Positions 5,575-52,788 of a stretch of 64,000 nt of DNA are shown here, one piece after another; positions within the stretch are counted from its first letter, which is position 1, and each line of letters starts with the position of its first letter. The notes under the pieces are model-generated. The model saw only the letters and a list, made by a program, of their open reading frames with translations. It made no database searches and was not told where the DNA came from. A program made the translations under genes and the position numbers. The stretch comes from Epiperipatus broadwayi (Eukaryota > Animalia > Onychophora). Location: the NCBI GenBank assembly GCA_028023455.1, contig JAQFVV010000011.1, positions 5,828,001 through 5,892,000 on the forward strand, written 5' to 3'.

Positions 5575-7042
5575 CTGTTTAGGTATATTAATTTGTTTTG
5601 TTTATTTGAATAAGGTATTTAATTTAAACATGCATAAAATATTCAAATATTAAAGTAATTCTACTCCTTAGAATAACCAATAAAGTAACTCCATTTCAAT
5701 CTTTTTTATTTATTTTTTGTTCAAAATGGATCACATATTAATTTTTCTTTTTGCTTTTTATAATATTGTCTTTCAATAATAATTATCACTATTCCATATT
5801 TTATTTTTTACTTTTTTAAATCTAAACAAATCTTCAAATATAAAGCACATATAATACATTTACAAGTATTCTTGTATTGCTAACTCTCACCAGTATTTTA
5901 ATAGCATGCACATTAAGATAGTTGTTCTAAAATTTATCAGTGAATTGAATCATTTCTTTAAAAAAATCATCTTTTAACTATTTCCCTGTATCATAAATTA
6001 CATCACAAAGCTTTAATTATTTCAAACACTTTTCTCTATAGTCTTCAGTTAATTATAATTGCAATTTCCTCAACTCGTTGTGCTTATCCATTTTTCATTT
6101 CTAATATAGTTTTAACAATATTTTTCTTCATTATATAAAGATAAATCTGTATGAGAATGACATAGCACCCACTACTGATGAAAGCTGCATCATGCCACTA
6201 TAGCCACATATTGTTATACAATAATTAATTAACCCAAAACATTTTGAAACATATTTTTCAGCTTTATCGACTAAATATTGATCAATAAATTTATCAAACA
6301 ATATTAGCTAGCTAATTGTTTATTTACAAATCATCCTTCTGAAAAAAATTAAATTGCATGATTGAAAAATCCACAAGTAACTAACAAAATATTTGAGGCT
6401 TCGCTTTGATTTGCATTCCTGAGTCATGGAATAAGCAATGAATGCAATAATCACTATATCATGTGACTCTTCTTTCATTGTTTTACAAACAATTTTATTA
6501 TTATCTACATGATTTCCAAATATCTCAAATAAAGACTTGCTATCTTTATCTTACAAATATTTATAAATCTTCACTAAATTGAAAAAATATTAGTTCTTTT
6601 TATGTTATGTATAGGATTTTTTAAAATATTAAACGTTGCTTTTTGATGTAAAAATTGACCAATCTCCACATGATGTTTTCACATTCCATTCTTATCAGAT
6701 ACTTTACAAATAATTGACAATTAATTGACAAAGCAATGATGTATTTATTTAAATAACATCACCTTACTCAATTTAATGTTAATGCTTGAACATTTAAATT
6801 AGCAGTCTATTTAATATAGCTTTATTTTTTATGGTTACTTACTAATGTATAATGCAATTTTTTCATCAATGGATATAGATGACACTTGGAATATTTAATA
6901 TTATTTATTTAATTAGTTATTTAAAATGCTAATAAATTATTAATATTTGTACACTAAAATAATTCTAAAATGCATTCACTATGAGCAAATACATATTTTA
7001 TTAGAATATATTTACATACCTATCAATACAATAAAGCCACTC

Positions 7043-7919
7043 ACTCAAGGCTTTAATAGGTTTATAAATTTAGATGATAACAACCAACCTTAAGCTATTA
7101 ACAGTCTCAATCTATAATAAACCTCCTTCAACAATAAAGTTGGTACTACCTTTATCTATGGTCTGATATGTTTATATAGACACTAAAGAATGCAACTTAA
7201 TCAAGAAGTGTGAGATTAATAATGCAAAGAAATTTAAAGAAACCTCATTAATCAGGCAAATATGATCTGTTATGAAAGCAGATAAATAAATAGTAAATTA
7301 TAACTTCCAGATTTTGAAAGCAGACTAATAAATATTTATTTATAACTTCCAAAGTCCATATAAATTATGTATTTACTAAACCAATTATTTAAGACTTTAA
7401 TAAGTTTATGCATTATTAATCTCACACTTTTTGGTCATGTTGCAATCTTTAGTGTCTAGATAAAGATATCAGACTGTAGGTAAAGGTGATAGCACTTTTA
7501 TTGTTAAAGGAGGTTGCCTTGATCATAAGTTGAGATTATTGATAGCTTAAGGTTGGTTGTTATCATCTATATTTATAAATTTATTAAAGCCTTGAGTAAT
7601 TACCTTTATTTTCTTAGTAAATATGTACTTTACATGGAATTTATAAATGATTACTTATTAGTTTGTTTTCATAATCTGGAGGTTATAATTGATTGTTTAT
7701 TAGTCTGCTTTCAGAACAGGTTATATTTTCCTGATTAATAAGGTTTGTTTAAACTTATTTGCATTACTAAAATCTCAAACTTCTTTGTCAAGTTGCAATC
7801 TTTAGTATCTATATAAACATATCAGATCATAGATAAAGGTGGTACCACCTTTATTATTAAAAGGGATTGCCTTGACTACATATTGAGATTGTTGATAGCT
7901 TAAGAGTTGTTTGTTATCA
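7043..7919. repeat. Three-copy inverted/tandem array of a ~330-bp unit
   Basis: Copy A (+) at 7043-~7385. Partial copy B (-) at ~7400-7597. Near-full copy C (-) at ~7612-7919. Example: CAACCTTAAGCTATTAACAGTCTCAA versus TTGAGATTATTGATAGCTTAAGGTTG. Confidence 0.8.
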
Positions 7920-13600: not shown

Positions 13601-14160
13601 AATATGAACTGTAGTAATTAATTGATCAACATTATTATGGATTAGCATGTAGATGCTTTCCAATTTTATTTAACAATTTACCGGTTAAATTTTTTAATTT
13701 GTTAGAATAAAATATTTCTAATATCAACTTTTTATTGTGTCTTATTAATATTAATGATTAAATTTATTAATATTAGTTAATTGCGTAATAAGTGTGTAAA
13801 TTACCTTTGCCAATAGTTATTAATTAAGCTCTGGGAATAATATTCTCTAAAAAATAAAGTTATGGGAAATCGTAATCCCGATCTTTTAAATTATTTTCTT
13901 CTTAATTTACGATGTGTGACGCGATGGATTTCAGTGGATTCTTGTATGAATCCTGGTGCCCTTGTTAAAATAAATAAAAAAACTGATTCCGTTGGCAATA
14001 CAAATTGTAATAATTAATAGGCCAGTTAATCAGGAAATATAGCTTTGTTTTTAGAAATATGAATGAAATATTTATATTTTTCTTCTTCATAACTTGATTA
14101 ACTTACACATTCTAGTGCATAATAGAAGGCCTACCAGAATGTGAAAAACATTATAATATA

Positions 14161-14505
14161 TTACATCACTTTCAAATAAAAGTAAAAAAAAATCTAAATA
14201 AAATCAACCTCAGGTAGAGATATATAAATAAGATATTACTAAAAGTTTTATTTAAATTAATATATAAAATGTACAGATGGCACCCTGGCATGGCAGATAG
14301 GTTTGGAAGGTTTCGTCGACCATTATAATTGGCCTCAACATGGGGCCAATTGGAATCTTCCAAACCTATCTGCCATTCCAGGGTGCCATCTGTTCATTAT
14401 ATATATTAATTTAAATAAAATTTTTAGTAATCTCTTTTTTATATATCTCTATTTGAGGGTGATTTTATTTAGATTTTTTTAAACTTTTATTTGAAAGTGA
14501 TGTAA
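14161..14505. repeat. 345-bp imperfect fold-back palindrome
   Basis: TTACATCACTTTCAAATAAAAGT... pairs with ...ACTTTTATTTGAAAGTGATGTAA. The arms run inward to about 14309 and 14358. The minus-strand centre reads ATGTTGAG-GCC-AATTATAAT-GGTC-GACGAAACC, possibly a decayed hammerhead. No convincing TSD. Confidence 0.8.
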
Positions 14506-15299
14506 TGGCATATATGTATACTAATATAACTAATTATTATTGAAATCGTATTTAGTTATTAGAGAATATCTGCAGTGTAGTGATTGTTTACTGTTCCTCA
14601 AGGTTTTAATTAAAATGTAATAATTTGCTATTGATAAATACTGAAGTGATGAAGACACACATAAGAGATTGTGATCTGGACCAACTAATGATTATTAGAC
14701 TAGCACAAAGTGCATATTGGAGATTATTTGACTTTTTCAGATGTCTTTATTCATATGTTTCAGGAATGTTTGGTGAAATATATCTAAGAAAGATATTACA
14801 TATGAAAAAGAGAAATAAATTTGAATTATTCTGTAGATTTATATTTAATTCAGTTCATCTGAAAAGTGAAGGGTATATGGGAATAAAAAAAGAGTGTGTA
14901 ATCTGACTTTCTGCGCAGGTGGTGTATTGAAGTTGAGATGAGATTTGACCTGATAAACTAAAAAAGACTTTGGATATATTTTCAAGTTTTTAAATAATTA
15001 TTAATGAGAGAATTTAGATATTAAGAGAATGCTTAAATTCCTTCATTCATAATATTATGAGATATAGCTCTGTTTTGCATTAATTACATAATTGTTTATA
15101 TAATAAAACATATATATTGAAAAGAAAAATTGATTTCTACTTCATTGTTTAAATATAATTTTTGAATTAATAATTTTAATGTACAGAATTTAGGATAAAA
15201 CATTTTTAAATATAGTAATTGATTTAATAATGGCGAAAAAGAAAGGGAAGGGTTGTTTTTAATGGAACTTAATCTGTCTTAAATAATGAATTTTTTATG

Positions 15300-19344: not shown

Positions 19345-20995
19345 AGAGATTCTTGACTTGGATAGAGTCATCACCATCATCATTTTCAATTATTGTCAAT
19401 TTATTGCAGGATGAAGTTCAATCCATCTCCACATCACCCTAGCACAGTTCCTTATTTCATCCATCCATCTCATATGTGGTCTCTTTCTAGGTCTTTTACA
19501 ATCTTTTGAAATCCAATTTAAGATTTCAACTATTCATCTATTATTATCTCTTCTAGCAACTCCATTTCACTCTCTTAATTCTTTCAATGATATCACTAAC
19601 ACATGTTCTCTCACTCATGTATTTTATTTTCAATCTCTTCTTATTACTCTTAATTTGCATTTCTTCATACTTCATTGAGTGGTCTTAAATCTGTATATTA
19701 CTCTTCTGGTAAGTGTTCAAGTCTCACATCCATAAGTAAAAGCTAGTAAAACATTTATTAAAATCTTCCTTTTCAACACATAGGTATGTTTTAAGTTTAA
19801 TTCTATGATTAATTTTTAATCCATTATGTTTCCATGTGTAGTAATAATCTGACTAAAGTATTTGTTAATTTCTTCTACCTCATCATTATCAACCTTTCTT
19901 TTCCTTTTTTCTTGAAAATCCATTGAACATTACTTTAGTCTTTTTAACATTTATTTTTAATCTTATTTTTTTACTTTCATCTGATAAATCTTGCAACATT
20001 TCCTGAATCTCTAAGGCATTAGTTGGAAAAACAACTATATCATCTGCAAAATCTAGATGACTTAAATAATCTCCATTTACTTTTACTCCCCTAGCTTCCC
20101 ATTTTAATCACAAAATACTTCTTATAAAACTGCTATAAAAAATTTCAGAAATATGGAGTCACCTGCCATATACCCATCTCAATGTTAATATTTTTAGTAT
20201 CATTAATATAATATAATAGTTGCTATTGCATTTTTATAAACATTCTTCAGAATATGACAATATCCTGAGTCTATACCTGATGATCCAATGCATTAATCAC
20301 TGAAGAAGTACTTATAGAATCAAATGCCTTTTCATAATCTACAAATCCAAAGCAGAATGCAATTCATATTTGTTGGTCCTTTCCATAACTTCTCTCAATA
20401 TTTGGATATGATCTACTGAACTGAAATCACTTATAAATCCAGCTTGTTCTTTTGGTTGGTTAAAATCCAAAGTTTGCTGTAGATGAGTTGTAATTATTTT
20501 GGTAAACATTTTGTATAGAACTGACAAAAGACTGATAGATCTCTAATTTCTAATATCATCTTTATCACATTTTTTTTAAAATATTAATATTAATGCTGCA
20601 TTCTTCCAATCCATTTGGTATACCTTTATTATTTAGACATTTGGTTTACAACTTTGCCAAAAACAATTCTGTTGCTTCAATTGACTATAATTTCATCATT
20701 ACTTGTAGCTTTTCCCTTTTTCATAAATTTAATTGCATGTCTTATTTATTCATTTAAAATCCTAGCCAATTCAGGATATGTAGTAGTTGTAGGGGGTACT
20801 TTTCATTGTTGTTTATTGCTATATAATTCTTGATAGAACTCTTCTACACATTTCATGATGTCATCCTTTTTTTTTTTAGTAATAGTTCCATTTTATTATT
20901 ATTATTGTAGAGCAGATGGCCAGTGGAGTTACCATTAAGTAATATTGTTTGTATCATTGTTCTGTCTAAATTTGAGAATAATATCTCGACTAAAT
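19345..20995 (-). mobile_element. RTE-clade LINE, 5'-truncated and decayed
   Basis: The minus strand encodes SVLYKMFTKIITTHLQQTLDFNQPKEQAGF..SSVDHIQILREVME, then YEKAFDSIS, then GVKVNGDYLSHLDFADDIVV. GATGATGGTGATGA-type 3' end near 19350-19385. Confidence 0.85.
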
Positions 20996-22040: not shown

Positions 22041-25000
22041 GTTTACATTTATTATACCTTTTCATCAGAACTCAAAGTCAACGAGTGCTTAAGAATTACA
22101 TATTTTCAAGAAAAGTGTTAATATTTTGAGAATTACAATAATAATAATATATATATAATTATAAATGTTTCTTAAATGAAGAAAATATAAACAATATTAA
22201 ATGTATAGCTTTAATGTATTTTCAATGTAGAGTATCCTTTTTAAGGGCAAACATTATGCAGAAAATGTATTAAGGCTATATATTTAATATTGTTTATATT
22301 GTCTTCATTTAAAAAATATTTTATAATTGCATATAAATTATTACATTTCAGTTATCTAGGATATGATGATAGACTGAATGCAATATATATATATATACTA
22401 TATAAATTAATAAGCATGTTCACATTCAATTTGTTATGGTTTTATTTGAACATATAATATTTTCTCATAATAGTTGTTATTGTATGTAAATTTTTATTGG
22501 TATATATAAATAAAATTGTTGTTTAAATGTATTATAGTACTAGTATTTTGGCTGTCTTTCTCCTGCCATCATCTGAGTAGCATGAATAATTAATTCAGAT
22601 ACATTGAGAATGGAAAATAGAAACTTGACATAATTTAACAGTTGATTTATTTCATTAAATTTGAAATTTAGAAGGATTGTTGGTATAACTTTTTTTTTTT
22701 TTTTGATAAACATGTTTTACAAAAATTTTCTAGATGATGGACACTTTTCTATTTCATCATGGATTCAGACTCACTAACTATTATCTAGTAGTGAGTATTG
22801 TATCTCAATAAAATTTAATTCTGCCTTTTGTTAACTAAAATTGCTTTATACTATTCTAATCTTATTTACGTGAGACACCCTCCTAGAGAACAGTCAGAGA
22901 GGCCAATGAGATACTTAAAAAAACTTATTTGTTTTAATGAATGAGATAAAGTGATCAAACTTTCATTCATAAGGTAAAATTTTGCAAAACATATTTATCT
23001 AAAACAAAACATCTTAAATTAGTCTTATAAATTTATAAATTTCAGATTAGATATAATAATCAGCTAAATCATATAACAGTTGATCTGCAGCCTGCGTTCT
23101 ATCACAAATGTTTAATAATATCAAACAAATGAGTTACTGATACTATCTAGATGGTGGCAAATGAAATCTAAAACAAATATCTATGCTATAATATTAATAA
23201 GAAACTGCATATATGAGGAAATTCAAAATCATGTACATTTCATAAAATTTAATTCCATACAATGGGATTTAGTTGTCAATGATATATAAAGGATGGTAGT
23301 AATTTTATGAACAAAAAATTGAGTGAATATATAGATTTTTATGACATCTGAAATTTTTTTTCCAAAAATGTTATATGATTCCATTTTTCTTATTCGTTTT
23401 TCTTATTCATGGAATTAATTAGAGTATTATAGTAATCTAATTTAAAACAAAATAATACCCATGAAAGCTGTTTTAATATTTTATGATAGAAGGAAGAGAA
23501 TATATGGAATGGACAGAATAGGTTAAACTCATTCTGCATTGAATTAATTGAAAATGATTATATTGAAAATAAATGATGAGGAAATTCACTTAGTAGAAAT
23601 GGATATTCACTGTAACAGGTCTGCTAAATCTTTTAGCATTTATTAAAATATTAGCCTTATGTGAGCATCTATCTCATTTGCTAAATTTTCCATAAAACAA
23701 AAAGTAGAGAAAAATAATAAAGTAATAAACATTGTTTTTTAAAATGTCCTTTAAAACGTAAGATTCAAATAAGCATTGTAGATTGTATTATTACAGATAT
23801 AGCTTTTATCTAATAACATATAAAATCCATATAAAATAATATATTCTTGGAGTAATTGACTAAGGGAGTTAATTAATCTGTTTGACAAAGTGAAATTAAT
23901 AATAATAAAATAATGTCATCAAATTCAATCTTCAAAATACTTTTTACTCCAGAAAAAAAAATATTATACATTTGATTCATCATTTTCCATATTCAAATAA
24001 TTATTATTATTCCCATCCAATCTGATACAATGGTATGATTTTTTTTCCCTGAAAAATAATACACTAAAAATAAAATAATTTTTAATAATTCAAAAGTACT
24101 TGCTTTGGCAGTAATTAAAGTGTAATTGCTTATTTTACTTTCTTTATGATAAAACAACTGTTTAGTGTTGCTGCTTGTTTATGTTTATTTATATGTGAAT
24201 ATCAGTGGAACAGCTACAGAACATTTGATCAAATAAATTTACAGTAACATAATAATCAATACAGCTGAAGAAAAAAACTATTACTAGGACCAAAATATAT
24301 CTGAAGGTCTGATAAGGGTAATAGGTAAAGACTCCCATTAATTTTTTTTTATTTCCATCTAAATGATTAATCAACTTAAGATATATATTTTTAATAAAAT
24401 TGGTTTTTAATTTGTTTTATTTAAATATTGTTTCTGGTTATTTTAATCTGATATTTTTCCTTACATAAAAAATAAGACACACGTAATAATTTTCTTAACA
24501 TCGTGTATTAATTTACTCCAGTTTCTGTTTTGCTTTCTATTTTGATATATATTTAAAATCATATTAAAATGGATAATTAAATAGAAAAGTTCAAAATAAT
24601 CTTTGAAAGTACATTAGGTTTAATTGCTTTAAAACGTGTTTAAACTAAACAAAAAATAAATTTTATTAAAAATATAAATTCAAGTAACATATACGTGTGA
24701 GAGGATAAGTACTAGAAATTCATACGGTTAAATATTTAGAATGGTTGAGATGGTCCATCAACTTTATTTTAATATTTGCTTTGATATCGCCATTTCAGTG
24801 GTCATATTTAAATTAAATGGTTTTGCTTATATTTTATATAATCCATAAAGAAATGAAAGCTTTTCTGTAAAATTGGTCTAATGAAATAATAAATGAATGA
24901 TTAGAATTTTATTGTTATTCTTGTAAGGCCTGGTTAAACACAAGTTAAATGCTGCATGATAATAATTAAGTCTTTTTATTTCTTACATTGCATTAGAGGC

Positions 25001-26209
25001 AGAATAAAATAAATCTATACAGGCAAATTTAATTATGTTTTTGAAGAGATAAAAAAGGAATAACATTTTTTAAGACATTGTGAATAACAAAGCATCATAA
25101 TCTCCAAGCTTTAATATATAGTTAATAGAGATAAGCAAGCACAATAAAAGGGTCTATAAATTCATACATTTCTGAAGATTATGATAGACAGTGCATGGAG
25201 ACCACTTTTGCCACTTACAAAGAAGAATTATATTGTAGACTATTGATAGTCATCTATCGGAAAAAAGTACTCATTGGATCGTGCAAGTGATTGTTTGTTA
25301 TTTGAAAGCTTAAAATACTTAAATTAGATGCATGTCCATTATTTTTCAGAAGATTTAACGTTAAATAAGATACAATTATTTTACTATTTTTAATATATTA
25401 TGACATTCAGTTCATGTTCCTATACCAGTGTAGTATTTATCCTACAGGTTAAATGAATATATTAATGAATTTTGCATTGTAATGCTTAGAAACATATTGC
25501 AGCAATTGTCCATACACTTACATTTAATATATAAATAAACTTGATATAATTCTACTTCATAAAATTCAAAGTCTAATTACAAGGATAGTTTTATCTCAGA
25601 TATAAAAGCAAAGAATCAATTATTAACCATAAAATTCAAAATCATAACCATAAAACCAGAAAAAATTATTATATTTTTTCAGTAAATAAATATATTTAGA
25701 ATTGCTTATTTTTATTAACACACACCTTTAAGAAATATTTTTCTTCTTTTTTTCCTTCTTTTTTTTTTTTATTTATTTACTAAATGTTAATTAATGAGCA
25801 TGATTGTTATTGGTTATTATTTTATTATATTTAATACATTTTATTTACTGTTGAAATTATGTCTTCCTGTGTCAATAAATAGAGATAACATTTGATAAAG
25901 TATACATTTTTTCTTTATAACTTGGATATTGTGAATGACTATTATCTATAATATTATTCATTATCTTCTTCAATTACAAAAATCCCTTCTGTCTTAACAT
26001 TTTGCCTAGACAATGTTAATGGTAGGTATGTAGACGTGTGATTAATTGTCTGCCTTAAATCATCAATCAGCATCTATTAACATTGCTGTGATACCTTCTA
26101 TAAATAAATCTGGTTACGATATGGCGAGATAGCCATTCATGTGACTTCATAGCATCTTTCTGACCACAACAATATATAAAAATATCACTAAAACGTAATG
26201 TATAAAATC

Positions 26210-26600
26210 AACTAGTAATGTTATAAACAGTGAGGATTGCCAATTCCTCTACAAGCTTTATGATAAATGCTTAGCCAGAGCCAGCACTTAAAATATCTCT
26301 GTCAGGAACCCCCCCCCAAACCCCTACCATGGTTGCCCCGGGGGGGGGGGGGGGGACACTAGATCTAGTGTCTGAACCTACCCTGACCCTCTGAGGAGTG
26401 CCAAAGCACGAAACCATGGTCAGGGGTTTGGGGAGGGGTTCCTGACAGAGATATTTTAAGTGCTGGCTCTGGCTAAGCATTTATCATAAAGCTTGTAGAG
26501 GAATTGGAAATCCTCACTGTTTATAACTTACAAGCTTAAGAGATAGGGTCATGTGATCTATGAATTGATCTATGACTTTTATTTTAACTAGTAATGTTAT
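26210..26600 (+). mobile_element. Fold-back insertion carrying a hammerhead, Penelope-like non-autonomous element, with 15-bp TSD
   Basis: Inverted arms 26220-26334 and 26412-26527 differ at about 3 positions. The spacer holds a G16 run, an 18-bp palindrome and the 5' half of the ribozyme. A 58-bp one-sided tail spans 26528-26585. Direct repeat AACTAGTAATGTTAT at 26210-26224 and 26586-26600. Confidence 0.85.
26387..26425 (+). ncRNA. Minimal type-I hammerhead ribozyme with intact core
   Basis: CCCT | CTGAGGA | GTGC-CAAA-GCAC | GAAA | C-CATG-GTC | AGGG. The CUGAnGA and GAAA core is exact. Stem II has 4 bp and stem I is CCCU/AGGG. Stem III has 2 bp with a palindromic CAUG loop. The GUC triplet predicts cleavage after 26421. 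Confidence 0.9.
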
Positions 26601-27345
26601 CTGTGTTATAGCGTCTAAATTCTTACAGTATTTTTATTGATGTCTTAATATGTACTTGTAACTTTTTAATTATTTGCAGCATTAGTAAATACACCCATAC
26701 ATGTATCTATATATACATTTATACAGAATTTAATTTTTTTATTATTTTTGTTGATATTTTATTGCATATTCAGAATTTTAAAATTAAAATATGTTTATTA
26801 TACAAGTAAGTGTGTTTAAAATATACATTATTCAGCATTTGATACCATTATGGATTTAGATTATCTTCAGGAATTCTTAGAACTAAATGCTATGAGTGTG
26901 GCAGTCCTACTCTATTAGTATTTTTTTTTTATTCTTAAGCAAGCTAGTATTGAATAGTCTCTTTTTATTTTTTTATTTTGACATATGATATAGTGTCATG
27001 ATATAAAAAGCATGATTAATTCTATCAAATAAAGTGATTGTGATCCATGTGAATGTAAAACTCAATTGATTTTTTTTTAAACATATAAATTGACAGTTGG
27101 AAAGTTTTAATATAATGGATTTTCTTATGGTATAATTGATTAATATATTATCTGCTAGTCTGGGGTCTGGGGTACCAATCGGACTCAGTTAATAATCTCA
27201 ATGTTTTTCAGATCACATATATTCTTAATAATTTTTATTAGTCATTCATTAGACTAGAGATTATCACTTAATGAATAATATTTCTGTAAATTTTCATTAC
27301 AGCATTCTCATGCAAAATGGGAACTGGTCTCTATCAACTTTTATC

Positions 27346-27483
27346 ACCTTGTGGAGGGGTGTAAATATAAATATATAATCAAAGACATGTGAAAAAGATG
27401 TATGACCCCCAAAATGCACATTTTATGTCAAAACAGTACTTATTAGTTGGTCATATGTTTATGTTTACACCCCTCCACAAGGT
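27346..27483. repeat. Small inverted-repeat element (MITE-like)
   Basis: ACCTTGTGGAGGGGTGTAAA pairs perfectly with TTTACACCCCTCCACAAGGT (20 bp). Pairing continues imperfectly inward. Confidence 0.7.
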
Positions 27484-27799
27484 TTAAACAATATATTCTC
27501 AGTGTTTCAGTAATGATCAGTAAATGGCTATCTAAATATTTTTAACTAGAGTGTAAAACTACTAGAGTAATTTGAGTTAGGTAGATATGCTGAGTATAAA
27601 GACATAAAAGAAAAAAATAATTCCCGTATGATGTGACTTTTATTGTTCATTAGGAAAATGTCACATTTTTCTGGTTTCTGAGCCCATGATTATATTTTTA
27701 TATAACTATTATTATAAAACTATGAGGTATTTATAATTAATGTATTTCATATATATGTAATATAATTTTCTAAGGTTTTAGCAGTTCATTCCTCACTTC

Positions 27800-28060
27800 A
27801 GCTTCACCAAATGGTCCGACTTTCTATACTGATGGATAGCTGCGATAAAGTGGATTTGAGATCAAAAACCAAAAAACAGGTTAATGGATGGTCATGTCGC
27901 ACAGTTGATATGAGAAATCCTGATAAAAATCAGCACATGTACAAATGTTATATGAATTTATAACACTTGCAAGATTTCCATATTATTTATAAAATCCAGT
28001 ACGCATCTACAATATTCCTAAGTTTATAGAAATCGGTTGTAGATGTAATAATTTGTGGAG
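27800..28060 (+). pseudogene. Second, more decayed Merlin/IS1595-like transposase fragment
   Basis: TFYTDG*LR*SGF...VMSHS*YEKS**KSAHVQML has the same (N/S)H-to-AH spacing as the 35.5-kb copy. Confidence 0.45.
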
Positions 28061-30084
28061 AAATTAAGCAGAAATATTCTACAGTTTTCATTTATGATTT
28101 CCGTACATTCTTAATCGCAAAATGTGTCGAAAAACTTTGTTGGAGGTCCACAAATTATCAGACATTTTAGTCTTTTATCTTATCTTATTATTAAAATTTG
28201 TGCGTTTTTATTATTATTTTACGCCACTATTACTGCGAAAGTACCAGACATGCCCAAGCTTGTTGGGGGGGGGGGGTAAAAATTCAGTAGCGCTTTTTTA
28301 CTATTTTTTATTCACATTTGTATACTACCTCCCTCTTGTGAGCATTTATCGAATTACAATAAGTTCTTCATTTTAAAAAATCATAATCATAAATAATATT
28401 ATATTAATAAATAAATAGTACAGTGCATTCAAATAATAAAATAATTAGTAATTATCCTGGGAAAGATAAAAATAATTTTGTTTATCATGATGACTATTAA
28501 TACATTTATCCATTATTCTTCTATCTATTTTGCTCTTCAATTTGTTTATAAGAGAATACCGGCATTCAATTATCTGTTATTTCTACTTTTCTCCTAATAT
28601 ATTATTTAAATATGTTTTATTTCTCTATGTGCATAAAAATCTTTATTATCAGTCACCGGTTTTTTTTTTCTGGAGACACATACCTCTTCAATTTACATAT
28701 ATCATAAAATACCATATGTATTTTATACACACACCTCACAATTTGACTCTTTTCGTTTTTGTATTTCAAGTTTGCTTATTAGTTTTCTATGTTATATCTT
28801 ACTTTTAAAATCTTTTTTTTTCTATTAGGTTCAGTGCATATAATTTAATACCATTGTCATCTTTTATTTTTATTGTATGACACATTTTTCATTAAATTCA
28901 TATCTATTCACTTTTTTCCTGCTTTGTCTTATAAGACTTCATATATCAAACTTTTCATGAATCTAAAATTTAATATATCTTTATTAAATCTTTTTCATTT
29001 AATATGATTTTCAAATTTGCGCGATTTGTAAATTAAGGCCGTACTGAAACATGCTAAGGAAAAGTATGGTCATTTGATTTCATTCATTTGTAGGCAGTTA
29101 GTTGTAAGTGGTAAAAAAAAAAAATTCAAATTGATGTATAAACTTCTTTTTTTTAAAAAAAATATTTTTATTGAAGTTAGTTAGTATTAATTCTAATTTT
29201 AACATAATTTTTATATTATTTTTGGATATCTTATTTTCTATAATTAATTATTTTTTTATTTAATTTTACGAGTTCTTTATATATATTATTGTGAAATCTA
29301 TAAGTGATCTACATATTAATTTCATTTTATATACAACGTATATATTACATATATTATATTTAGATTTTTGTTTACCATTATTTTTTTTTTTTAATCAGTT
29401 ATAATACAGTGTAGATTTCGATATATTTTGAAACAAATTACAATTTATACGTATATAAAAGTGATTTTGGTTTCATTTTTAGAAAAATACTTTACAGTTT
29501 GCCCCCATTCAAAAATCTCAAAAACAGCGATTATCAACAACTTGCCACTAATTAGCGATATAAAAAAATATTAAAGAAATAAAAAATTGAAATTTATAAA
29601 TTAATTAATAATTCTTAAAATATATGCTTATATATCATTTGCGTGCGCGCGTGTGTATAGTAGCTGAAATTTTTTTGTCTCACAAAATTTTTTAGTTACA
29701 TCTTGCAGTCTTTACGAAGGCAATACATATGTTTCATTACATTTCTCTGTTATCTTTTAAAAATTTAATAATTTATTTAAGAATGGTCTCAAAACCAATC
29801 TTAGATAATCCAAATCTAAAAGAGACGATAAAATATTTCTTTTGTGTGAAAAAATGAAATGATTAATTTTGTTTTGAAAGAAAAATTGTGTTAATAATTT
29901 TTATTAGCTAGAGTGAAAAATTGGTACTGTCTTTGGCCGGCTCCATTTGTAAATTTATCAAGAAGAAAAAAAAATGTTGAGATTGGTTATGTTTTTTAAA
30001 ATGCTAATGATATAGCCACAATATATGATAAATATTTAGCAAAGATTGGAAAGGTGTTGAATTTGTAGCGATGAATAAAAGGAA

Positions 30085-30450: not shown

Positions 30451-31839
30451 TTTAGGATCTAATAATCCCTGCTTTCTCAAAAACCAGAATAAAAATCATA
30501 TATCTAAATTATGGCAATATAAAAGATTATTTCTATTTTATTTATGGAATTTTATTGTTTATCTTGGAAATTAAATATTATCTAAAACAAATTTAAATTC
30601 AGAATTATGCTAAATATTGATAGTGTTATTTTGAACATAAAAATGTAAATCTTTTTTTTTTTTTTCCAAATACTTATTTTTTACTGCAATTTCCTAACCA
30701 AGATCATATTCATGCATTCAGTATTCAGTCAGATTTGAGAAGCCTTGAGTGCTAACTAATGCTCAATTGGTGTAATGCTGAAAATCATTCATTATTATGG
30801 ACACAGTAATATTTATAAAAGAAATAGTCAAAAAATTAAAACCAGAACCTCATAATGCATGTTGAAAGATTGTGTAGAGTAAAGATGTGAATGATTTTTA
30901 AACATGTTCTTTTAAAATTAAAACCCATGTGCTACACCCATAAGTTCTAAGCCTTGAGATTATAACAAGATATACTTCATGTTTATACAAAAATTTAGAG
31001 AAGGTTTTATTGATAAAACTGGTGAAGAAGTTATTCAGCGTATTGAAGGCCATAAGAAGAAATTTATGAGATAAAGAATTATAAGTTATTGTTGAGACAG
31101 TAATAAATGAGAAGGAGGAAAAAGAAGAACTGAACCACAAAATAGATATTAGGAAAAAAACAATGCAGTGTTACTGGTTGTACAGAGATGATTAGCAAAA
31201 AAATTTGCAATACCTGTTAGATCTTTTTGGTGGACTAAAAAGAAATAGTCTCAGAAAAAAAGAAACAGAAGGAACTCCATCACTTCCTCTTCGTCACACA
31301 TTATTTAGATTTTTCAGAAAAAGGGCTCATCTAATCTGTATTATTTCGTTCTTTAAAATCACTCAAAACAGATATATTTTTGATATTTTATCAGAAAATC
31401 AATAATCCAATTTTAATTATAAAAAGATTTTTTTAAAAATTATTATTATTATTTTGAGGTGGTAAAAATAATTGAATGAGTACATCAACAGTAGTATAGT
31501 GTGTATATATATATGTGAAAATATAAAAATTCTATTTTTTTATTTTTATTAATGCTTTATTGTATATAATATTTAATTAAAGTCAATGTATGTGTTTAAA
31601 ACTTATATATAGTTCTCTATTATTTACAAATTCTGATAATCACATGAAAGGCTTGGAAACCAAATGCCATTAATACAAGGAACTACTATATTTTGATTTA
31701 TATTTTTATACAATTTTTTTACTTATATTTTCAGACTTTTATGTGAAAAAATAAAATAATAAATGGTAAAATTACCCCTGGTTTTACACCACACAATTCT
31801 ATTCCACAGGGCCCACCACTAAGTGCCTTTCTTTTTATA

Positions 31840-33600
31840 ATCTACATAAATCCGCTGCTTCAAGAAATAGAGATAAGATTGCCCGGCATATACATTCCGG
31901 TAATCGACAAGACAGTAATGCATATAGCATTTATAGATGATCTCATGGTTTTCTTTCTTCTAAAAAATATCTCTCTTTACTAATTTCAATTTTGGAACAA
32001 TACTCGACCTAATACCACCTTCAGTTTAATCTAGACAAATCATCTGCATGGAGGTTTCTCATGGGCAATAGTGTTACATCTCCCTTCACTACAAATCCTC
32101 ATAATTTTCTTGGGTTCCTGATCTATAAGTCAATGACAGCTATGAGAAAGGCTATCCAGGAAACTATTCTAACATCAATTCAAAACATAGCAAAAACATT
32201 ATCCAAAGTTTACCTATCTATTCATGCAAAGGTCTCTCTCATTAGCATCTTAATCTTTCCAAAAATGAATTTCTACATGCCAATGGTCAATTATACCCAA
32301 TGCCTTTAAGAGAAAGATTAACTCACTTTGTCAAAACTAATATGGAACAAAAAAGTTGTGACAATTAGTATGTAATATTCATTAAGGCTGTAGCCTTAAG
32401 CACATGCGTATAAAATGCGATAGTAGGCACCTCAACAGGTCTTAAACTACAAGCTTACTCTTTGGAAGAAAAGAGGGGAACCCTTCTTTACTTCAATCTA
32501 CTTTCTATTTAAATAGGTGAAGCTGAAGCGGTTCGATCTGAGAGCGTGAAGCTATTCAATACTTCACTAATTAAGTCCACATTTCTTATTACACATTAAT
32601 GCTCGTGAAATCTTTTGATTTACAACAAGTCAATGGAAAGATTTTATAGTGAGAAATCTATTACGATAATTTAAAGTTTGTAATTATAAATTTATTTAAA
32701 AGCACATTGATTACGTAAGTAATATTCATTAAGGCTGTAGCCTCAAGCACATGCTTATAAAATGTGATAGTAGGGACCTTTACAGGTCTTAAACCACAAG
32801 CTTACTCTTTGGAAGAAAAGAACTTTGCAAAAGCATACCAAAGATAATGGTCTATCCCTCCACTCAATCAATATCTTTTTTTACCAAAAGGCATTCAATG
32901 CAATTTCCAGAATTATCTCATTCCATCCAAATGCCATCAAATTCATCCAAATTATCTTGATAGACAAATCACCCCCCCCCCCGTGAAAAGTGAATGGCTT
33001 TTATCCTTGGGTCAAACTCATTGCAGCTAGTATTGACCTGGATGAATAATTATTTCCTCGGAGAATTAACTTCTGGGAGATGTATAGCATATACATGGCA
33101 AGTGTCAACCAGCCCCATCTCTACTTAACATTACAAATAAGCAGATAATCAAGAAATTTAAATATTGGTATTTAGAAGCAAAATATCTAGATTTTATAAT
33201 CAAAATCAACTTGGATGCCCTCCCCACCAGCCACTTCCTATCACAAAGAAGAGGAATTGCAAAAATAGATCCAGTCTGTTCATTTTGTCGCCAATCTGAA
33301 GAAGCTACACATCACTTTATATACCAGTGCTCAGTTCTCCACATCTACAGAAATACTATCTAATCACTTACAAACTCTAATAAATCTACCATTTCAACCC
33401 TTACTAATAGCATTAAAAGGGGCATTTTGCCCTCAATTAGAATTGCTGCTTTCCTTTTATTTACCATTTGATCCCTGAAATGCTATCTTTGTTTCAACCT
33501 TACAGCTAATAAATTTCAATCACTCTTCTACAATAAAATTGGAAAAATCAAGAACAGAGATCAGCACTAGCCCTGCCAAACACAGTTATTGCATCATAGA
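31840..33600 (+). mobile_element. L1/Tx1-like LINE ORF2 fragment (RT motif to zf-RVT), decayed
   Basis: IPVIDKTVMHIAFIDDLMVF (FADD-like, ~31893-31950), NFLG, LSKVYLSIHAKVSLISILIFPK, and LDALPTSHFLSQRRGIAKIDPVCSFCRQSEEATHHFIYQC (~33210-33330). Confidence 0.7.
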
Positions 33601-35870: not shown

Positions 35871-35967
35871 CATTGGTGGTCGAGAGGTCAGTGCGACTGC
35901 CTTGCACTTGCAGGCAGTTGCCCGGGTTGCGGGTTCGCATCCCGGCCGATGCTATGACACTTAAAAA
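35871..35967 (+). mobile_element. Short tRNA-derived SINE with 16-bp TSD
   Basis: A-box-like TGGTCGAGAGG, B-box-like GGTTCGCATCC, 3' GATGCTATGACACTT and an A-tail. Direct repeat AAAAGTTTAGTTGTTG at 35855-35870 and 35968-35983. CpG-rich. Confidence 0.85.
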
Positions 35968-36975
35968 AAAAGTTTAGTTGTTGTTTCTTTTTTTTTTTTA
36001 CACATTAAACTTACTTTTAGTTCACCATTTTGTTTTCAATAAATTGACCAATCAAGCATGTCGAAATATCTTGTACAGGCATTATTTAACAAGATCACAT
36101 GAATAAAACATCATGACAGGTCTAAAACATAACTACCTTTAAAATTTCTTTTCCATCACATTTTCTTGAAACATATAAACAGAGATATCTGAAAAATGTA
36201 AATGACTCTCAGGTGCATTTCTGACTTTCACATCTCTTGGTCATTTATTCAATATTTAGCAATCCCAAATTACTAAAATTTGATCTGCAAGACTCAAACT
36301 GCTTACATTCTCACCTTGATATTATCCACATTATACAATGAAGAATTCTGGTTTACCCATGCATCTTGAGGGTCATTCACTTTTTTAGATGTTTTTATTA
36401 ATATCTTTTAAGAATATGTGAAAAATAGATATTTCAGTGGAGTCTATTAAAATGAATCAATTAGTTCCAGGAAGCCATTTATTATGCAATTGCTTCATTA
36501 TAGTTTACATTGAAGTACATATATTTAGGGAATATCCATTCCAGGTTTTTTGCCATGACTAAAATTGCCACCCAAAACAACCCGTTTAAGCAAAAGAAAT
36601 ATAAAATATAAATGTAAAAATATCTCAATGCAACTTTTATTCTAGATAATTGAAATCCCTCTAGCTATAGCATAAGAATAATTTTATCAGTAAAAAGAGA
36701 AATACTGCTCTTTTATTGATAAAAATGCCTTATGTTAATTATAGCTAAAGAAAATTTTAATCACCTATAATAGCAGTTGTATTGAGATTTAATCTTAAAA
36801 CATTAAATATTCTAGATTAAACTATAAATATTTTATGTTAAATGTAAAAATTGATGGAACAAACAAGTCGGAATATGTTACTAAAATAAGCCACATGATA
36901 GATTCCCAAGGAATCATTTAAATAAATTTATTACTCATATCTTTGGTTATATCAACAACAATCTATTTTTTCCAT

Positions 36976-37064
36976 GTGTCATAGCATCGGCCGGGACGCG
37001 AACCCACAACCGTCTGCAACCAACTACTTGCTTGCATGGCGGCTGCGATACCTCTCGCTAAATG
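36976..37064 (-). mobile_element. Second copy of the same SINE family
   Basis: The minus strand reads CATTTAGCGAGAGG...GGGTTCGCGTCCCGGCCGATGCTATGACAC. The 3' end CCCGGCCGATGCTATGACAC is identical to the 35.9-kb copy and the middle has diverged. Confidence 0.8.
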
Positions 37065-37700: not shown

Positions 37701-37987
37701 AAAAACTACTAAAGTATTAAAGATTTTAAGACTTCTCATTCGATAATTTAATATACAAAATTAACAAAGCGTATGCCACACTTGAATGAGAAGCTATAAA
37801 GATACACAGAAATTATTACACACTAAGCGCTTTCGAGGTCTTTTGCCTCATATTCATAGCGGTACTGAATATGAGGCAAAAGACCTCAAAAGCGCTTAGC
37901 GTGTAATAATTTCTGTGTATCTTTATAGCTTCTCATTCAAGTGTGGCATACGCTTTGTTAATTTTGTATATTAAAAACTACTAAAGT
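37701..37987 (-). mobile_element. Fold-back insertion with degenerate hammerhead at its centre and 15-bp TSD
   Basis: Arms 37747-37856 and 37866-37975 (110 bp, 2 mismatches, both at CpG) around a 9-nt loop. A 31-bp one-sided extension spans 37716-37746. Direct repeat AAAAACTACTAAAGT at 37701-37715 and 37973-37987. The arms begin (C)TGAATA T GAGG-CAAAAGA-CCTC GAAA GCGCTT. Confidence 0.8.
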
Positions 37988-40900
37988 GGAAGAAATTGTA
38001 AAAAACTAAATGTAAATAAGCTCATGAAACTAGTAACAATATCTGAAATGTTCAAAGCTGAAATGCTGTGAAAAATCTTGTGTATGTGATTGTATTTCAA
38101 CCAATAGCACTTATTGTATCGTTCTTTTTTTTCATTTAGTGGCATTCATTGATTTAGTGATCTATATATACTTAGCACCTATTTTTTTAAAAAAAATTGC
38201 TTTGCTTTAGTTTTGACTTTTCTATTTATTTTAATATGGATATTAATCAGTTTTCAAATTTTAGTTTTATTGTATATAATTAAAATTATTGCAGTATAGA
38301 CATGTCAGAGAATACTTTTAAGGACAACATTTTTACTGCTAGGCATAAAAGACCAAGTGAATTAGTTTTTCATTTTGAAACTTTTTTTTTAATACCAGAA
38401 TTTTATTTTGAATTTTTTAAATATCAAACATTAATCTCTTTCATTGAAATTATGCTAATGTAGCAAAATAAAATCCCCTAAAAAACAAACCCCAGCAATA
38501 ACTTACAGTATTTATGAAAAGTATTATATAATATTTAATATCAAAATGCCCACACTATCAAATACAGTCATAAAGGAGTTGATTTCAAATTACATTTAAA
38601 TGAAATATATATATATTCAAATCTAATTTAGTAGTCTCTAACTATAATATATAGTTTAGTTCTATCTACATACATCGATCGCCCCTATAATTAGGCGCCT
38701 CATATTCTAACCTAATAAAGTATATTCTCCGTGATCTGCAAATTCACCAATGTGCATCCTCGGCCTAGCTCAGTGGTCGGTTAGTTATAAAAAATTTAGC
38801 TACAGAGATATGCAGTTAAGACAAGGAAAGAAATTAAAATCATAAAATAAATTATCATCAGTAAAATAAATATCTTGGGAAGAAAGAGAAATGCACTCAT
38901 TCCCTAATTAATAATTTAGAATAAAATAACATCCCTTCCTTATCAAAAACACATTCTCTGAGCTATAAGAATTTGCACTTTTCAACAATGATGATAACTT
39001 CTCATCTTCTTGTTAATGTTACTCAAAAAAAATATATATCCATTATGTAAATAATTTGCCAATATGATCTGAAAATAGTTTTCTTATAGCACAATTGTAA
39101 GTTAAACTCCTTTAAGCCACATCACAATTGTAATATCAACAATAATTGATCACTTCTTAATTAAAGAATAATTATAATGACAGTAATAATCTCAGGGTTT
39201 CTTTGTCTACTTTATTAAAAAAAAACTACAGTACTGTGCTGTCACATATGACTAGTATTCTGGTAAGTTATAGGAAACATTCACTTTACTTCAAAGTTAA
39301 TGGGTCCTCATATATCATAACAACTATTATAACGATTTAAAGGGATGATAAATAGGATTAACAATGACTTGAATAATCACATAAAATTTCGAATAATGTA
39401 GCCTTTTTATCCAGAATCTCGGTCAGAATAATAAAAAGACAAGGGTGCTTTTTGTGTTCTTCCATCATCCATGACAACGCAATAAATTAACTAAGACTAA
39501 TTCATTCAACAATTTAAATAAATATAACTGGAATAAGGTGCAGTCAGGGTTAATAACTTGGAAATAAATTTATTCTTACAATTAAATGATGTTTAGTCTG
39601 AAGTTTGCAATTCCATAACTAATTCTCATTAAAATAAAATGAAATGAAATATTCAGATCTGCGTAAAGATTGTCTATCTGGTATATTAAGCTTTTGAGAG
39701 TTTGAAATGATTTCAGACTCAAGAAAATGTTTTGCAAATATTGTGCAAACACACTTATATTTAGCATTAAAAAAAAAGAATTCACAACGAATATTGACAA
39801 GACTATAATTTATTACTATCACAGAACTAAAAAAATATATACAAATTTATTAAATAATATCACATTGATACGAAACATAAATCAACATTAATCTGTCTAT
39901 TGTTTAGTTATAAATTAAAATTATAAATTCGCATGTTTGCAATCATGCTATTGCATTGGATTGACTAGCTAAAAAGTGCATCTTATTTACTAATACACTA
40001 ATCTATAATTTCGGTAAACTTTCTATAAAGCTTTTACTTAAAGTTATTGACTAACTATTTTTGTTTTTTATTGATTAATACTATGATATGAAGTATGCAA
40101 AATATTAAATTTATTCCTAATAAAGTTTATCAAGTTATGGTTTTTAATTGAACAACCTATTCCTAATTATAGGCCATTTATCAGAAGTCGCACTCACCAT
40201 CTCACATTTAACTTAATGTCCACCTAAGTTACGATAAATATTTTAATTATAAGTGTAATTCAAACCAGAGATATTTCTTAATTATTAACTAACACTAAAT
40301 GTTGTGTTTGAATATTCCTCCAACAAATAAGCGTTTTAAAATACGCAGTTTTAACTTAACTTTCTCCATTGGTTTGCTTGTCAACTACTAGCAAGATTCA
40401 GTAGCACAATACAGATATTGATCTCAATTACTAAAACACTATTGATACTAAAGTGCACCTTGAGGAACTAACACCTCAAACCTAACATTTATCCTTGCCC
40501 TAACTTTTAAAACAAAGCACAATAATCAACACCTTCTATGGTGGAACTATCTTTATATTCACATGAGGAATGCAGAATAACAACGAATGTCTGCAGAGTA
40601 AAATCCTACACTGAAGTATTTTGGTGGTTTCTTGCCTATTACTCAGGCATAAAACATATAGGTGTGGAATCTATATCCTGACCACCTAAAGAAAACGAAC
40701 GTGCAGCAAATATAATCCTCTTTTGTGATTTAAAATACCTTAAGTTTACTAAATATTATATCAACTATGGATCGTTCTATTCATGAGAATCGATCATCTG
40801 GACTATCAAACCTACCATAACCTTGTATCAAAACTAATCCTCCCACGGAAAATAAAGTATCTTGGGGAGATCATTTTCATCCCACAAAATAAAATACATT

Positions 40901-50789: not shown

Positions 50790-51088
50790 ATATATATTTG
50801 TGTTGAACCATCACTTATCAGTTGATCCAGATCATCATCTCCCATACATATATAATCAGTGCTCAGTTTATATTAAGATAGAATATCTTCAAACTTTAAT
50901 GGACAGGCTTCAATCTATTCCAACCTCCATGACTGAAGAGTTGAAGGGTGGAGTAGATTGAAGCCTGTCCATTAAAGTTTGAACATTTTCTATCTTAATA
51001 TAAACTGAGCACTGATTATATATGTGTTTTGGACATGATGATTTGGACCAACTGATGAGTTCTGGTTCAGCATGAAATGTATATTTTG
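50790..51088. mobile_element. ~300-bp fold-back with two hammerhead-like motifs
   Basis: Near-perfect inner arms 50846-50922 and ~50950-51025, with weaker pairing out to ~50790 and ~51085. CTGAAGA lies at the centre (50933). CAA|CTGATGA|GTT-CTGGTTCAG-CAT|GAAA|T-GTAT-ATT|TTG lies at 51049-51088. Confidence 0.7.
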
Positions 51089-52685: not shown

Positions 52686-52788
52686 GTTGACTGAATCTTG
52701 CCATGATCAAAGTTCGAGATTTGTCAAATTAGTAGCTAAACCAAATTGCAGTTATTTAGTTCCAGAAGATTTTGTTCCTTTTATTCAG
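52686..52788 (+). CDS. PPP2R3A: Internal coding exon of a protein phosphatase 2A regulatory subunit B'' (PR72/PR130-like)
   Basis: Polypyrimidine tract and TTAAG acceptor end at 52685; CAG|GTAAGT donor at 52788/52789. After 1 nt the frame is open for 34 codons: LTESCHDQSSRFVKLVAKPNCSYLVPEDFVPFIQ. This matches my recollection of human PPP2R3A (KLLNNHHDDASKFICLLAKPNCSSLEQEDFIPLLQ). It is too short for the ORF track. The choice between paralogues A and B is uncertain. Confidence 0.88.

Follow-up and report, generated by a model that had tools for sequence, protein, structure and literature searches.

A hammerhead motif that lies on the same strand as a host exon poses the question of whether the ribozyme could cut the host transcript or whether the motif was brought there by a mobile element that uses it on its own RNA. 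The motif considered here lies on the plus strand of a 64-kb window (the whole stretch of Epiperipatus broadwayi DNA that was analysed, 64,000 nucleotides in length), upstream of a single recognisable exon of a PP2A B'' gene. An answer depends on the integrity of the motif, on the DNA in which it is embedded, on the repeat family to which that DNA belongs, on the host gene and on the structures that a transcript of the locus would be predicted to adopt.

Results

A minimal hammerhead motif with a complete core

Direct reading, Rfam alignment and a pattern scan identify a minimal type I hammerhead motif at 26387-26425 (+), with the letters CCCU / CUGAGGA / GUGC-CAAA-GCAC / GAAA / CCAUGGU / C / AGGG. 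The core is complete (C3 U4 G5 A6 G7 G8 A9, G12 A13 A14, A15.1-U16.1 and C17), with the CUGAGGA box at 26391-26397, helix II and its loop at 26398-26409, GAAA at 26410-26413 and C17 at 26421, and the cut is predicted to fall between C26421 and A26422. Helix I consists of 4 bp, formed by 26387-26390 with 26422-26425 (CCCU/AGGG), and is open, without a loop 1, and helix II consists of four Watson-Crick pairs (GUGC/GCAC, with a CAAA loop) that include G10.1-C11.1. The place of helix III is taken by ACCAUGGU at 26413-26420, an 8-nt palindrome, which leaves a monomer without a usable loop III. The original prediction that every conserved core nucleotide is present is thus confirmed by direct reading together with the Rfam alignment, and direct reading also bears out its description of a 4-bp Watson-Crick stem II, a 4-bp stem I and a palindromic stem III.

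The Rfam model Hammerhead_1 (RF00163) aligned over its full length with 26385-26427 and scored 33.4 bits (E 1.6e-6, 601 nt searched). This is 0.6 bits short of the gathering score of 34, for which reason a gathering-level Rfam scan of the whole window reports no hammerhead. The shortfall is explained by the missing loop III and the short helix I, and is expected for the minimal variants that Penelope-like elements (PLEs) carry. A permissive Rfam scan of both strands of the whole 64-kb window found no hammerhead besides 26387-26425, the motif pattern matched once in the 64 kb while 100 shuffles yielded no match, and neither exact nor relaxed motif scans of metagenome contigs and of viral contigs returned a match.

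Minimal dimer-type hammerheads of PLEs were reportedly described by Lunse, Weinberg and Breaker in 2016/17. Akin to the minimal PLE hammerheads analysed by Cervera and de la Pena (2014; PMC4209133), the motif shows type I topology, a full core with G10.1-C11.1, a short open helix I, no real loop III and a palindromic 15.x-16.x segment, which implies an intermolecular helix III, and it occurs in massive copy number in an animal genome. Unlike them, it comes without a PLE ORF in the copy at 26225-26585 that carries it, and its helix II of 4 bp differs from the large helix II of the PLE hammerheads (6 bp in the Drosophila virilis PLE variant). A cofold of two molecules predicts an 8-bp intermolecular helix through the palindrome that spans 15.x-16.x; a second motif nearby is absent, the pattern being unique in the 64 kb and the adjacent copy of the element being inverted and truncated in the core. 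As defined by its sequence, 26387-26425 is a minimal dimer-type PLE hammerhead, of predicted activity.

Two head-to-head copies make up a 361-bp insertion

The motif sits within an insertion of 361 bp (26225-26585) that contains no ORF and is flanked by a 15-bp target site duplication (TSD), the left copy of which (AACTAGTAATGTTAT, 26210-26224) is identical to the right copy (26586-26600) at 15/15 positions. Inside the TSD, two copies of the same element stand head to head. The left copy (26225-26334, minus strand), delimited by arm alignment and blastn, is inverted and 5'-truncated; the right copy (26356-26585, plus strand), delimited with the help of family contigs, is in sense orientation, likewise 5'-truncated, and carries the complete hammerhead. 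The left copy corresponds to 26412-26527 of the right copy, with which blastn aligned it on the minus strand at 96% over 124 nt. It begins at an internal site, has no tail, lacks C17 and ends within the hammerhead core, where it reads GCAA instead of GAAA. The left TSD ends in GTTAT and the left arm starts with these same 5 nt, an overlap that is a microhomology at the priming site.

The 5' limit of the right copy falls between 26356 and 26362, as the family consensus upstream of 26389 matches to about 26362, and an 18-nt perfect palindrome occupies 26355-26372. At its other end the right copy alone carries a one-sided 3' tail of 58 nt (26528-26585, plus strand), the left copy ending at the equivalent of 26527. 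This tail holds about 12 nt more than the family tail of about 46 nt: the family contigs depart after 26563 and resume with an end of the CT(C/T)TTATTTT type. We also considered whether the tail might begin another tandem unit and rejected this reading as unsupported (local alignment score 13, matched by 124 of 500 shuffles). The two copies are separated by a junction filler at 26335-26355, GCCCC followed by 16 G, that matches no part of the element, and a low-stringency blastn search with the element against the window recovered only the element itself and its inverted partner.

The arms of the resulting foldback, 26220-26325 and 26422-26527, are 98% complementary over 106 nt, with 9-10 nt more across a 1-nt indel. 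They mismatch at two of the 106 positions, 26434 and 26508, both of which are listed polymorphisms of the family, and the left arm carries C at 26508, the majority base. It is therefore probable that each arm was copied from a template unit of its own, and, as no substitution that postdates the insertion is visible, the insertion is young.

Other inverted repeats of the window

Foldback insertions are frequent in this window, whose G+C content is about 25% throughout. A different family contributed another young foldback, at 37701-37988, with arms at 37747-37856 and 37866-37975 (110 nt, 98% complementary), a 9-nt centre, a 15-bp TSD (AAAAACTACTAAAGT) and a one-sided tail, here on the left; its arms hold a degenerate hammerhead-like relic (CUGAAUA box, AAAA for GAAA, palindrome AGCGCU). 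Further inverted repeats of the foldback type lie at 14160-14506 (153 nt, 92%), 50846-51025 (84 nt, 94%) and 22163-22321 (61 nt, 89%), and a complex inverted set with arms of about 100 nt (82-86%) lies at 7013-7868. By eye, no clear hammerhead core is present in 14120-14560 or 50800-51080. A 59-nt inverted pair (35925-35983 and 36953-37011, 83%, about 1 kb apart) includes a G+C-rich segment resembling a tRNA T-arm and may represent a tRNA-derived SINE pair or transposon ends; ARAGORN found no tRNA genes in the window.

The element belongs to an extremely abundant family

The family was characterised with contigs of four public runs aligned to 24000-29000, variation being expressed as summed contig depth. 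The element family is extremely abundant: in the DNA run of the same species, the summed word depth, which is not a copy number, reaches 0.7-1.4 million on the element compared to about 10-25 on the unique flanks. The contigs show the hammerhead motif to be conserved across this high-copy family and in other species. In another species, a 234-nt contig spans 26374-26590 and mismatches at two positions, which confirms the 3' limit of the element. Antisense-sense joints occur in single-locus contigs at many different breakpoints (26244>26511, 26258>26518, 26296>26467 and others), indicating that head-to-head insertion with random 5' truncation is a habit of the family. Head-to-tail joints are few and are found in low-depth, single-locus contigs (26547>26362, 26558>26440).

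Within the hammerhead, the family frequently carries an extra T after 26388, which accounts for 243/256, 350/459 and 23.8k/55.7k of the contig depth (43-95% depending on the run, the share being lowest, 43%, in the DNA run and highest, 95%, in an RNA-library run). With this T, helix I would comprise 6 bp (ACCUCU/AGGGGU); the copy at 26387-26425 lacks it, and its helix I is thereby shortened. A common family variant, G>A at 26410, would destroy G12.

RNA evidence comes from two small RNA-labelled runs of two species, in the form of assembler contigs that retain neither strand nor ends. In these runs the depth of the element is 260-1900 and that of the unique flanks zero, a value that contigs cannot turn into proof of absent transcription. 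Both along the element and relative to the repeat at 27173-27506, the profile of the RNA runs is several-fold unlike that of the DNA run, which argues weakly against mere carry-over of DNA. The RNA-run depth represents RNA of the family and not transcription of the 26225-26585 locus, and the RNA contigs span the predicted cleavage site 26421/26422 uncut. The repeat at 27173-27506, which contains a 37-nt inverted pair (27346-27382 and 27447-27483), reaches a summed depth of about 3.3e5 in the DNA run, compared to about 20 on its flanks, and of 1100-1275 in both RNA-labelled runs; compared with the hammerhead family, it is relatively much commoner in the RNA runs than in DNA.

The motif probably lies in an intron of the PP2A B'' gene

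The sole recognisable PP2A B'' exon of the window, recognised with PDB entries 4mew and 4i5l and with an HMM, lies at 52687-52788 (+), 26 kb downstream of the hammerhead. Its 34 codons are internal to the protein and match 4mew with an E value of 6.8e-9 (87 homologues; HMM E 2.6e-16), and it is bounded by a polypyrimidine tract with an AG acceptor and by a GTAAGT donor. No further PP2A B'' exon was found in the window, either by tblastn with 23 longer homologues (very permissive tblastn gave noise) or by an HMM of 16 homologues run against each of the 4313 ORFs with 10 or more aa. The introns of this gene appear to be very large, the exon being preceded by more than 52 kb and followed by more than 11 kb that are devoid of a detectable conserved exon. 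Since the exon is internal and 1-52686 holds no conserved upstream exon, an intronic position on the sense strand is plausible for the hammerhead, and we consider it probable that the motif lies in an intron of PP2A B''. The earlier observation that motif and host exon share a strand holds, both being on the plus strand.

Conserved intronic hammerheads of amniotes, HH9 and HH10, were reportedly found by de la Pena and Garcia-Robles in 2010. The present motif resembles them in lying on the sense strand of a presumed host intron, but HH9 and HH10 are single-copy, ultraconserved and fold as monomers, whereas 26387-26425 is part of a young repeat copy, and its score with the Rfam HH9 model is 23.6 bits (gathering score 52). 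Its presumed intronic position also contrasts with the situation in vertebrates, the introns of which are depleted of retrozymes (bioRxiv 10.64898/2026.07.22.740005).

The hammerhead is predicted to be sequestered in a long hairpin

Folding of the insertion as a plus-strand transcript gave a long hairpin as the structure of minimum free energy (MFE), with -269 kcal/mol and a z-score of -24.6. In this structure the 3' strand of helix I (26422-26427) is paired with the left arm (26320-26325), the palindrome (26412-26420) with its left-arm twin (26326-26334), and the 5' strand of helix I along with part of the core (26387-26396) with the G-run/GCCCC filler (26337-26345). A ribozyme-competent fold lies 28.7 kcal/mol above the MFE in the insertion, as opposed to 7.3-8.3 kcal/mol for the motif or the right copy alone, so that the surroundings disfavour the ribozyme by about 20 kcal/mol more. 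Transcription reaches the left arm before the motif, and pairing of the substrate strand in the foldback is predicted with P > 0.93 at every transcript length from 26430 on. Helix I is missing from every nearest-neighbour prediction, that of the motif in isolation included: its pairing probability is about 0 even in the right copy alone, where the model favours a CUGA/UCAG register. The energy cost was used in its place, with only the difference in energy being informative. All folds are equilibrium predictions that leave out kinetics, tertiary contacts, helicases and protein chaperones. Matches of the hairpin to microRNA families were discarded as artefacts, such as any long hairpin produces.

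These results bear on the possibility that the hammerhead is live in the PP2A B'' intron, where it would cut the pre-mRNA after C26421 as the transcript is being made, and would do so ahead of hairpin closure or through a dimer formed in trans. The complete core, the strand shared with exon 52687-52788 and an intervening stretch that can plausibly be taken for an intron, given that no conserved upstream exon lies between motif and exon, are all as expected of such a site. A partner in cis is absent, however, as the head-to-head copy is core-truncated and on the opposite strand, and dimerisation would have to occur in trans: abundant family RNA could supply a partner hammerhead, and with family RNA present in RNA libraries such a molecule could pair through ACCAUGGU, cofolding favouring the dimer (-39.0 kcal/mol) over a pair of separate monomers (2 x -14.8 kcal/mol). 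Against a live site stand the foldback, which is predicted to form as soon as the substrate strand is transcribed and which imposes the additional penalty on the ribozyme fold, and a helix I of only 4 bp that lacks the T found in 43-95% of the family depth. Single PLE hammerheads showed no detectable cleavage, and dimers and trimers low activity (PMC4209133, PMC6765202), in agreement with the earlier statement that minimal PLE hammerheads are poor as monomers and better as dimers; they perform poorly even as dimers (PMC4209133). One PLE hammerhead is known to be assisted by protein, but it cleaved only with the protein of its own element, and RNA-seq was devoid of ends at the cleavage site (Frangieh et al., 2024; PMC11167929).

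The original prediction of a potentially live self-cleavage site at 26421/26422 in the host pre-mRNA is thus unsupported, with no dimer partner in the 64 kb, and it is further weakened by the cost of 28.7 kcal/mol, by the missing T of helix I, by the distance of 26 kb to the exon and by the zero depth on the unique flanks in two small contig sets, which by their nature cannot show absence of transcription. We regard cleavage of the host transcript at this locus as unlikely. Since a cis partner and a base of helix I are missing and the hairpin sequesters the motif, the hammerhead is most likely catalytically silent here, with its substrate strand and palindrome locked, in the predicted structure, in a hairpin of about 115 bp.

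If transcribed on either strand, the hairpin might itself be the relevant activity of the locus, its near-perfect duplex of about 106-115 bp feeding Dicer-type or editing enzymes and giving rise to small RNAs directed against the family. Its predicted stability and the 98% complementarity of its arms would suit such a role, as would the great abundance of the family, its presence in RNA libraries and the occurrence of several more foldbacks in the window, but this is a deduction purely from structure, to which we attach a low probability; it is compatible with an origin of the locus by twin priming.

The insertion bears the footprint of probable two-strand priming

Insertions of PLEs are characterised by strong 5' truncation, an adjacent inverted and 5'-truncated copy and a tail that is often present at one end only (Craig et al., 2021; PMC8557442). 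The insertion at 26225-26585 displays this footprint: a head-to-head pair of 5'-truncated copies, a one-end tail, a TSD of the variable kind and an AT-rich target. Moreover, a PLE protein, once purified, was able to nick both strands of the DNA, to extend them and to start reverse transcription at two internal RNA sites, the spacing of which corresponds to the tail (PMC11167929), akin to the two alternative start sites, 26527 and 26585, seen here. The tail of 58 nt (about 46 nt in the family) is longer than the 30-40 bp described for PLEs, the left priming site shows 5 nt of microhomology with the target whereas the PLE studied in vitro initiated without homology (PMC11167929), and the 16-G junction filler is a difference from described PLE insertions.

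An autonomous PLE would possess a single ORF that encodes a reverse transcriptase (RT) of telomerase-like type and a GIY-YIG endonuclease, next to a pseudo-LTR (pLTR), which is where PLE hammerheads are located (PMC8557442), whereas this insertion has 361 bp and is ORF-less. The available data contain no PLE RT or GIY-YIG ORF linked to the family, and in the window Pfam identified only decayed RVT_1 and zf-RVT domains more than 5 kb away, so that it is the footprint which points to a PLE enzyme as the probable mobiliser. The decayed RT fragments, which contain stops, are found at 19892-20542 (-; RVT_1) and at 31747-33360 (+; RVT_1, with zf-RVT at 33088-33360), and no GIY-YIG or intact ORF was seen at either of them.

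We propose that the 361-bp insertion would be the product of twin priming, in which the two nicked strands of the target both serve as primers for target-primed reverse transcription. The bottom-strand nick would have primed at the distal site (26585) and given rise to the sense copy with its tail (26356-26585); the 3' end of the top strand, GTTAT, would have primed, presumably in this order, by microhomology at the internal AUAAC (26527) and given rise to the antisense copy (26225-26334). Both cDNAs, 5'-truncated near the hammerhead, would then have been joined via the GCCCC+G16 filler, leaving the 15-bp TSD. In the family at large, the hammerhead would act in the processing of the element's own multimeric RNA, with an activity that is weak, dimer-dependent and probably protein-assisted. 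Taken together, the evidence makes it likely that the locus is a young twin-primed insertion from an abundant ORF-less family of the PLE or non-LTR-retrozyme kind, the hammerhead of which is most likely silent at this site.

Twin priming is said to have been described for LINE-1 (L1) by Ostertag and Kazazian in 2001, with the second nicked strand priming internally on the same RNA. Its product is an inversion with 5' truncation and a TSD; as a rule, an L1 inversion is an inversion/deletion product that stems from a single RNA and ends in poly(A). The present insertion shares with L1 twin priming the proposed internal second-strand priming, the inversion, the 5' truncation and the TSD, but, unlike L1, its arms overlap fully to make a true foldback and represent different variants of the family, and it lacks poly(A).

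The near-identity of the arms extends as far as the nucleotide that follows the predicted scissile bond and stops precisely there; in the left copy exactly C17 is then missing, after which it continues for 9 nt. It is conceivable, though we would call it a long shot, that this junction is a fossil of ribozyme action: the cDNA would have reached the 5'-OH end of a cleaved RNA and moved on to the 2',3'-cyclic-phosphate end of a second cleaved RNA, skipping the modified C, and the telomerase-related RT of a PLE would have added the G-run by reiterative or untemplated synthesis. A template jump followed by reiterative synthesis would explain both the loss of C17 at the arm boundary and the 16-G junction, yet the reading was fitted post hoc to one event. 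Arms do not end at the cleavage site in general: those of the foldback at 37716-37973 run through the hammerhead relic to the 9-nt centre, and contigs of another family locus continue across the site and retain the C.

A foldback or MITE-type DNA transposon that contains a hammerhead-like sequence in its terminal inverted repeats by chance would account for long inverted arms with a flanking direct repeat, but its termini should abut a short TSD of fixed length. Here the left arm abuts the TSD and the right arm is not terminal, being followed by the 58-nt unique tail; nor is the left copy a symmetrical end, being a shortened form of the right one. Furthermore, the length of the TSD (15 bp) and its microhomology to the element are in keeping with target-primed reverse transcription, and other family loci are joined at varying breakpoints, which fits random 5' truncation and not fixed termini and renders a DNA transposon very improbable. 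A chance match to the hammerhead consensus is scarcely credible even with an Rfam score marginally below threshold, considering the E value, the empty shuffles, the three helices and G10.1-C11.1 all in place, the conservation of the motif across the family and other species, and the PLE-type footprint around it.

Discussion

The family to which this probably twin-primed insertion belongs has much in common with the animal non-LTR retrozymes (Cervera and de la Pena, 2020; PMC7229834): both are short, ORF-less elements of very high copy number with a type I hammerhead, a TSD of more than 4 bp and RNA in libraries, and a few low-depth contigs of the family show head-to-tail joints, which may reflect tandem units. 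Retrozymes, however, are built of tandem units of 150-450 bp, have canonical hammerheads with contacts between loop 1 and loop 2, and give rise to circRNAs (PMC7229834), whereas 26225-26585 contains a single sense unit with a minimal hammerhead, the helix I of which is open and has no loop 1 to engage in such contacts. In light of the proposal that non-LTR retrozymes derive from PLEs and are not autonomous (Li, Clavereau and Pollet, 2026; bioRxiv 10.64898/2026.07.22.740005), the family may belong to the PLE-derived non-autonomous elements (PMC7229834; bioRxiv 10.64898/2026.07.22.740005).

As a hammerhead, the locus is an ordinary example, one more minimal hammerhead of PLEs or of their non-autonomous derivatives, which scatter such motifs by the thousands through animal genomes, and its significance in this respect is small. 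As an insertion, it is a very clean and young example of the PLE-type footprint of two-strand priming that was reconstituted in vitro in 2024: its TSD is perfect, one of its priming sites shows microhomology, its tail stands at one end only and its arms represent different family variants. It could help to define start sites and junction chemistry genome-wide. It also advises caution against calling 'intronic ribozymes' by motif alone, as it is the surrounding hairpin, and not the core, that decides folding.
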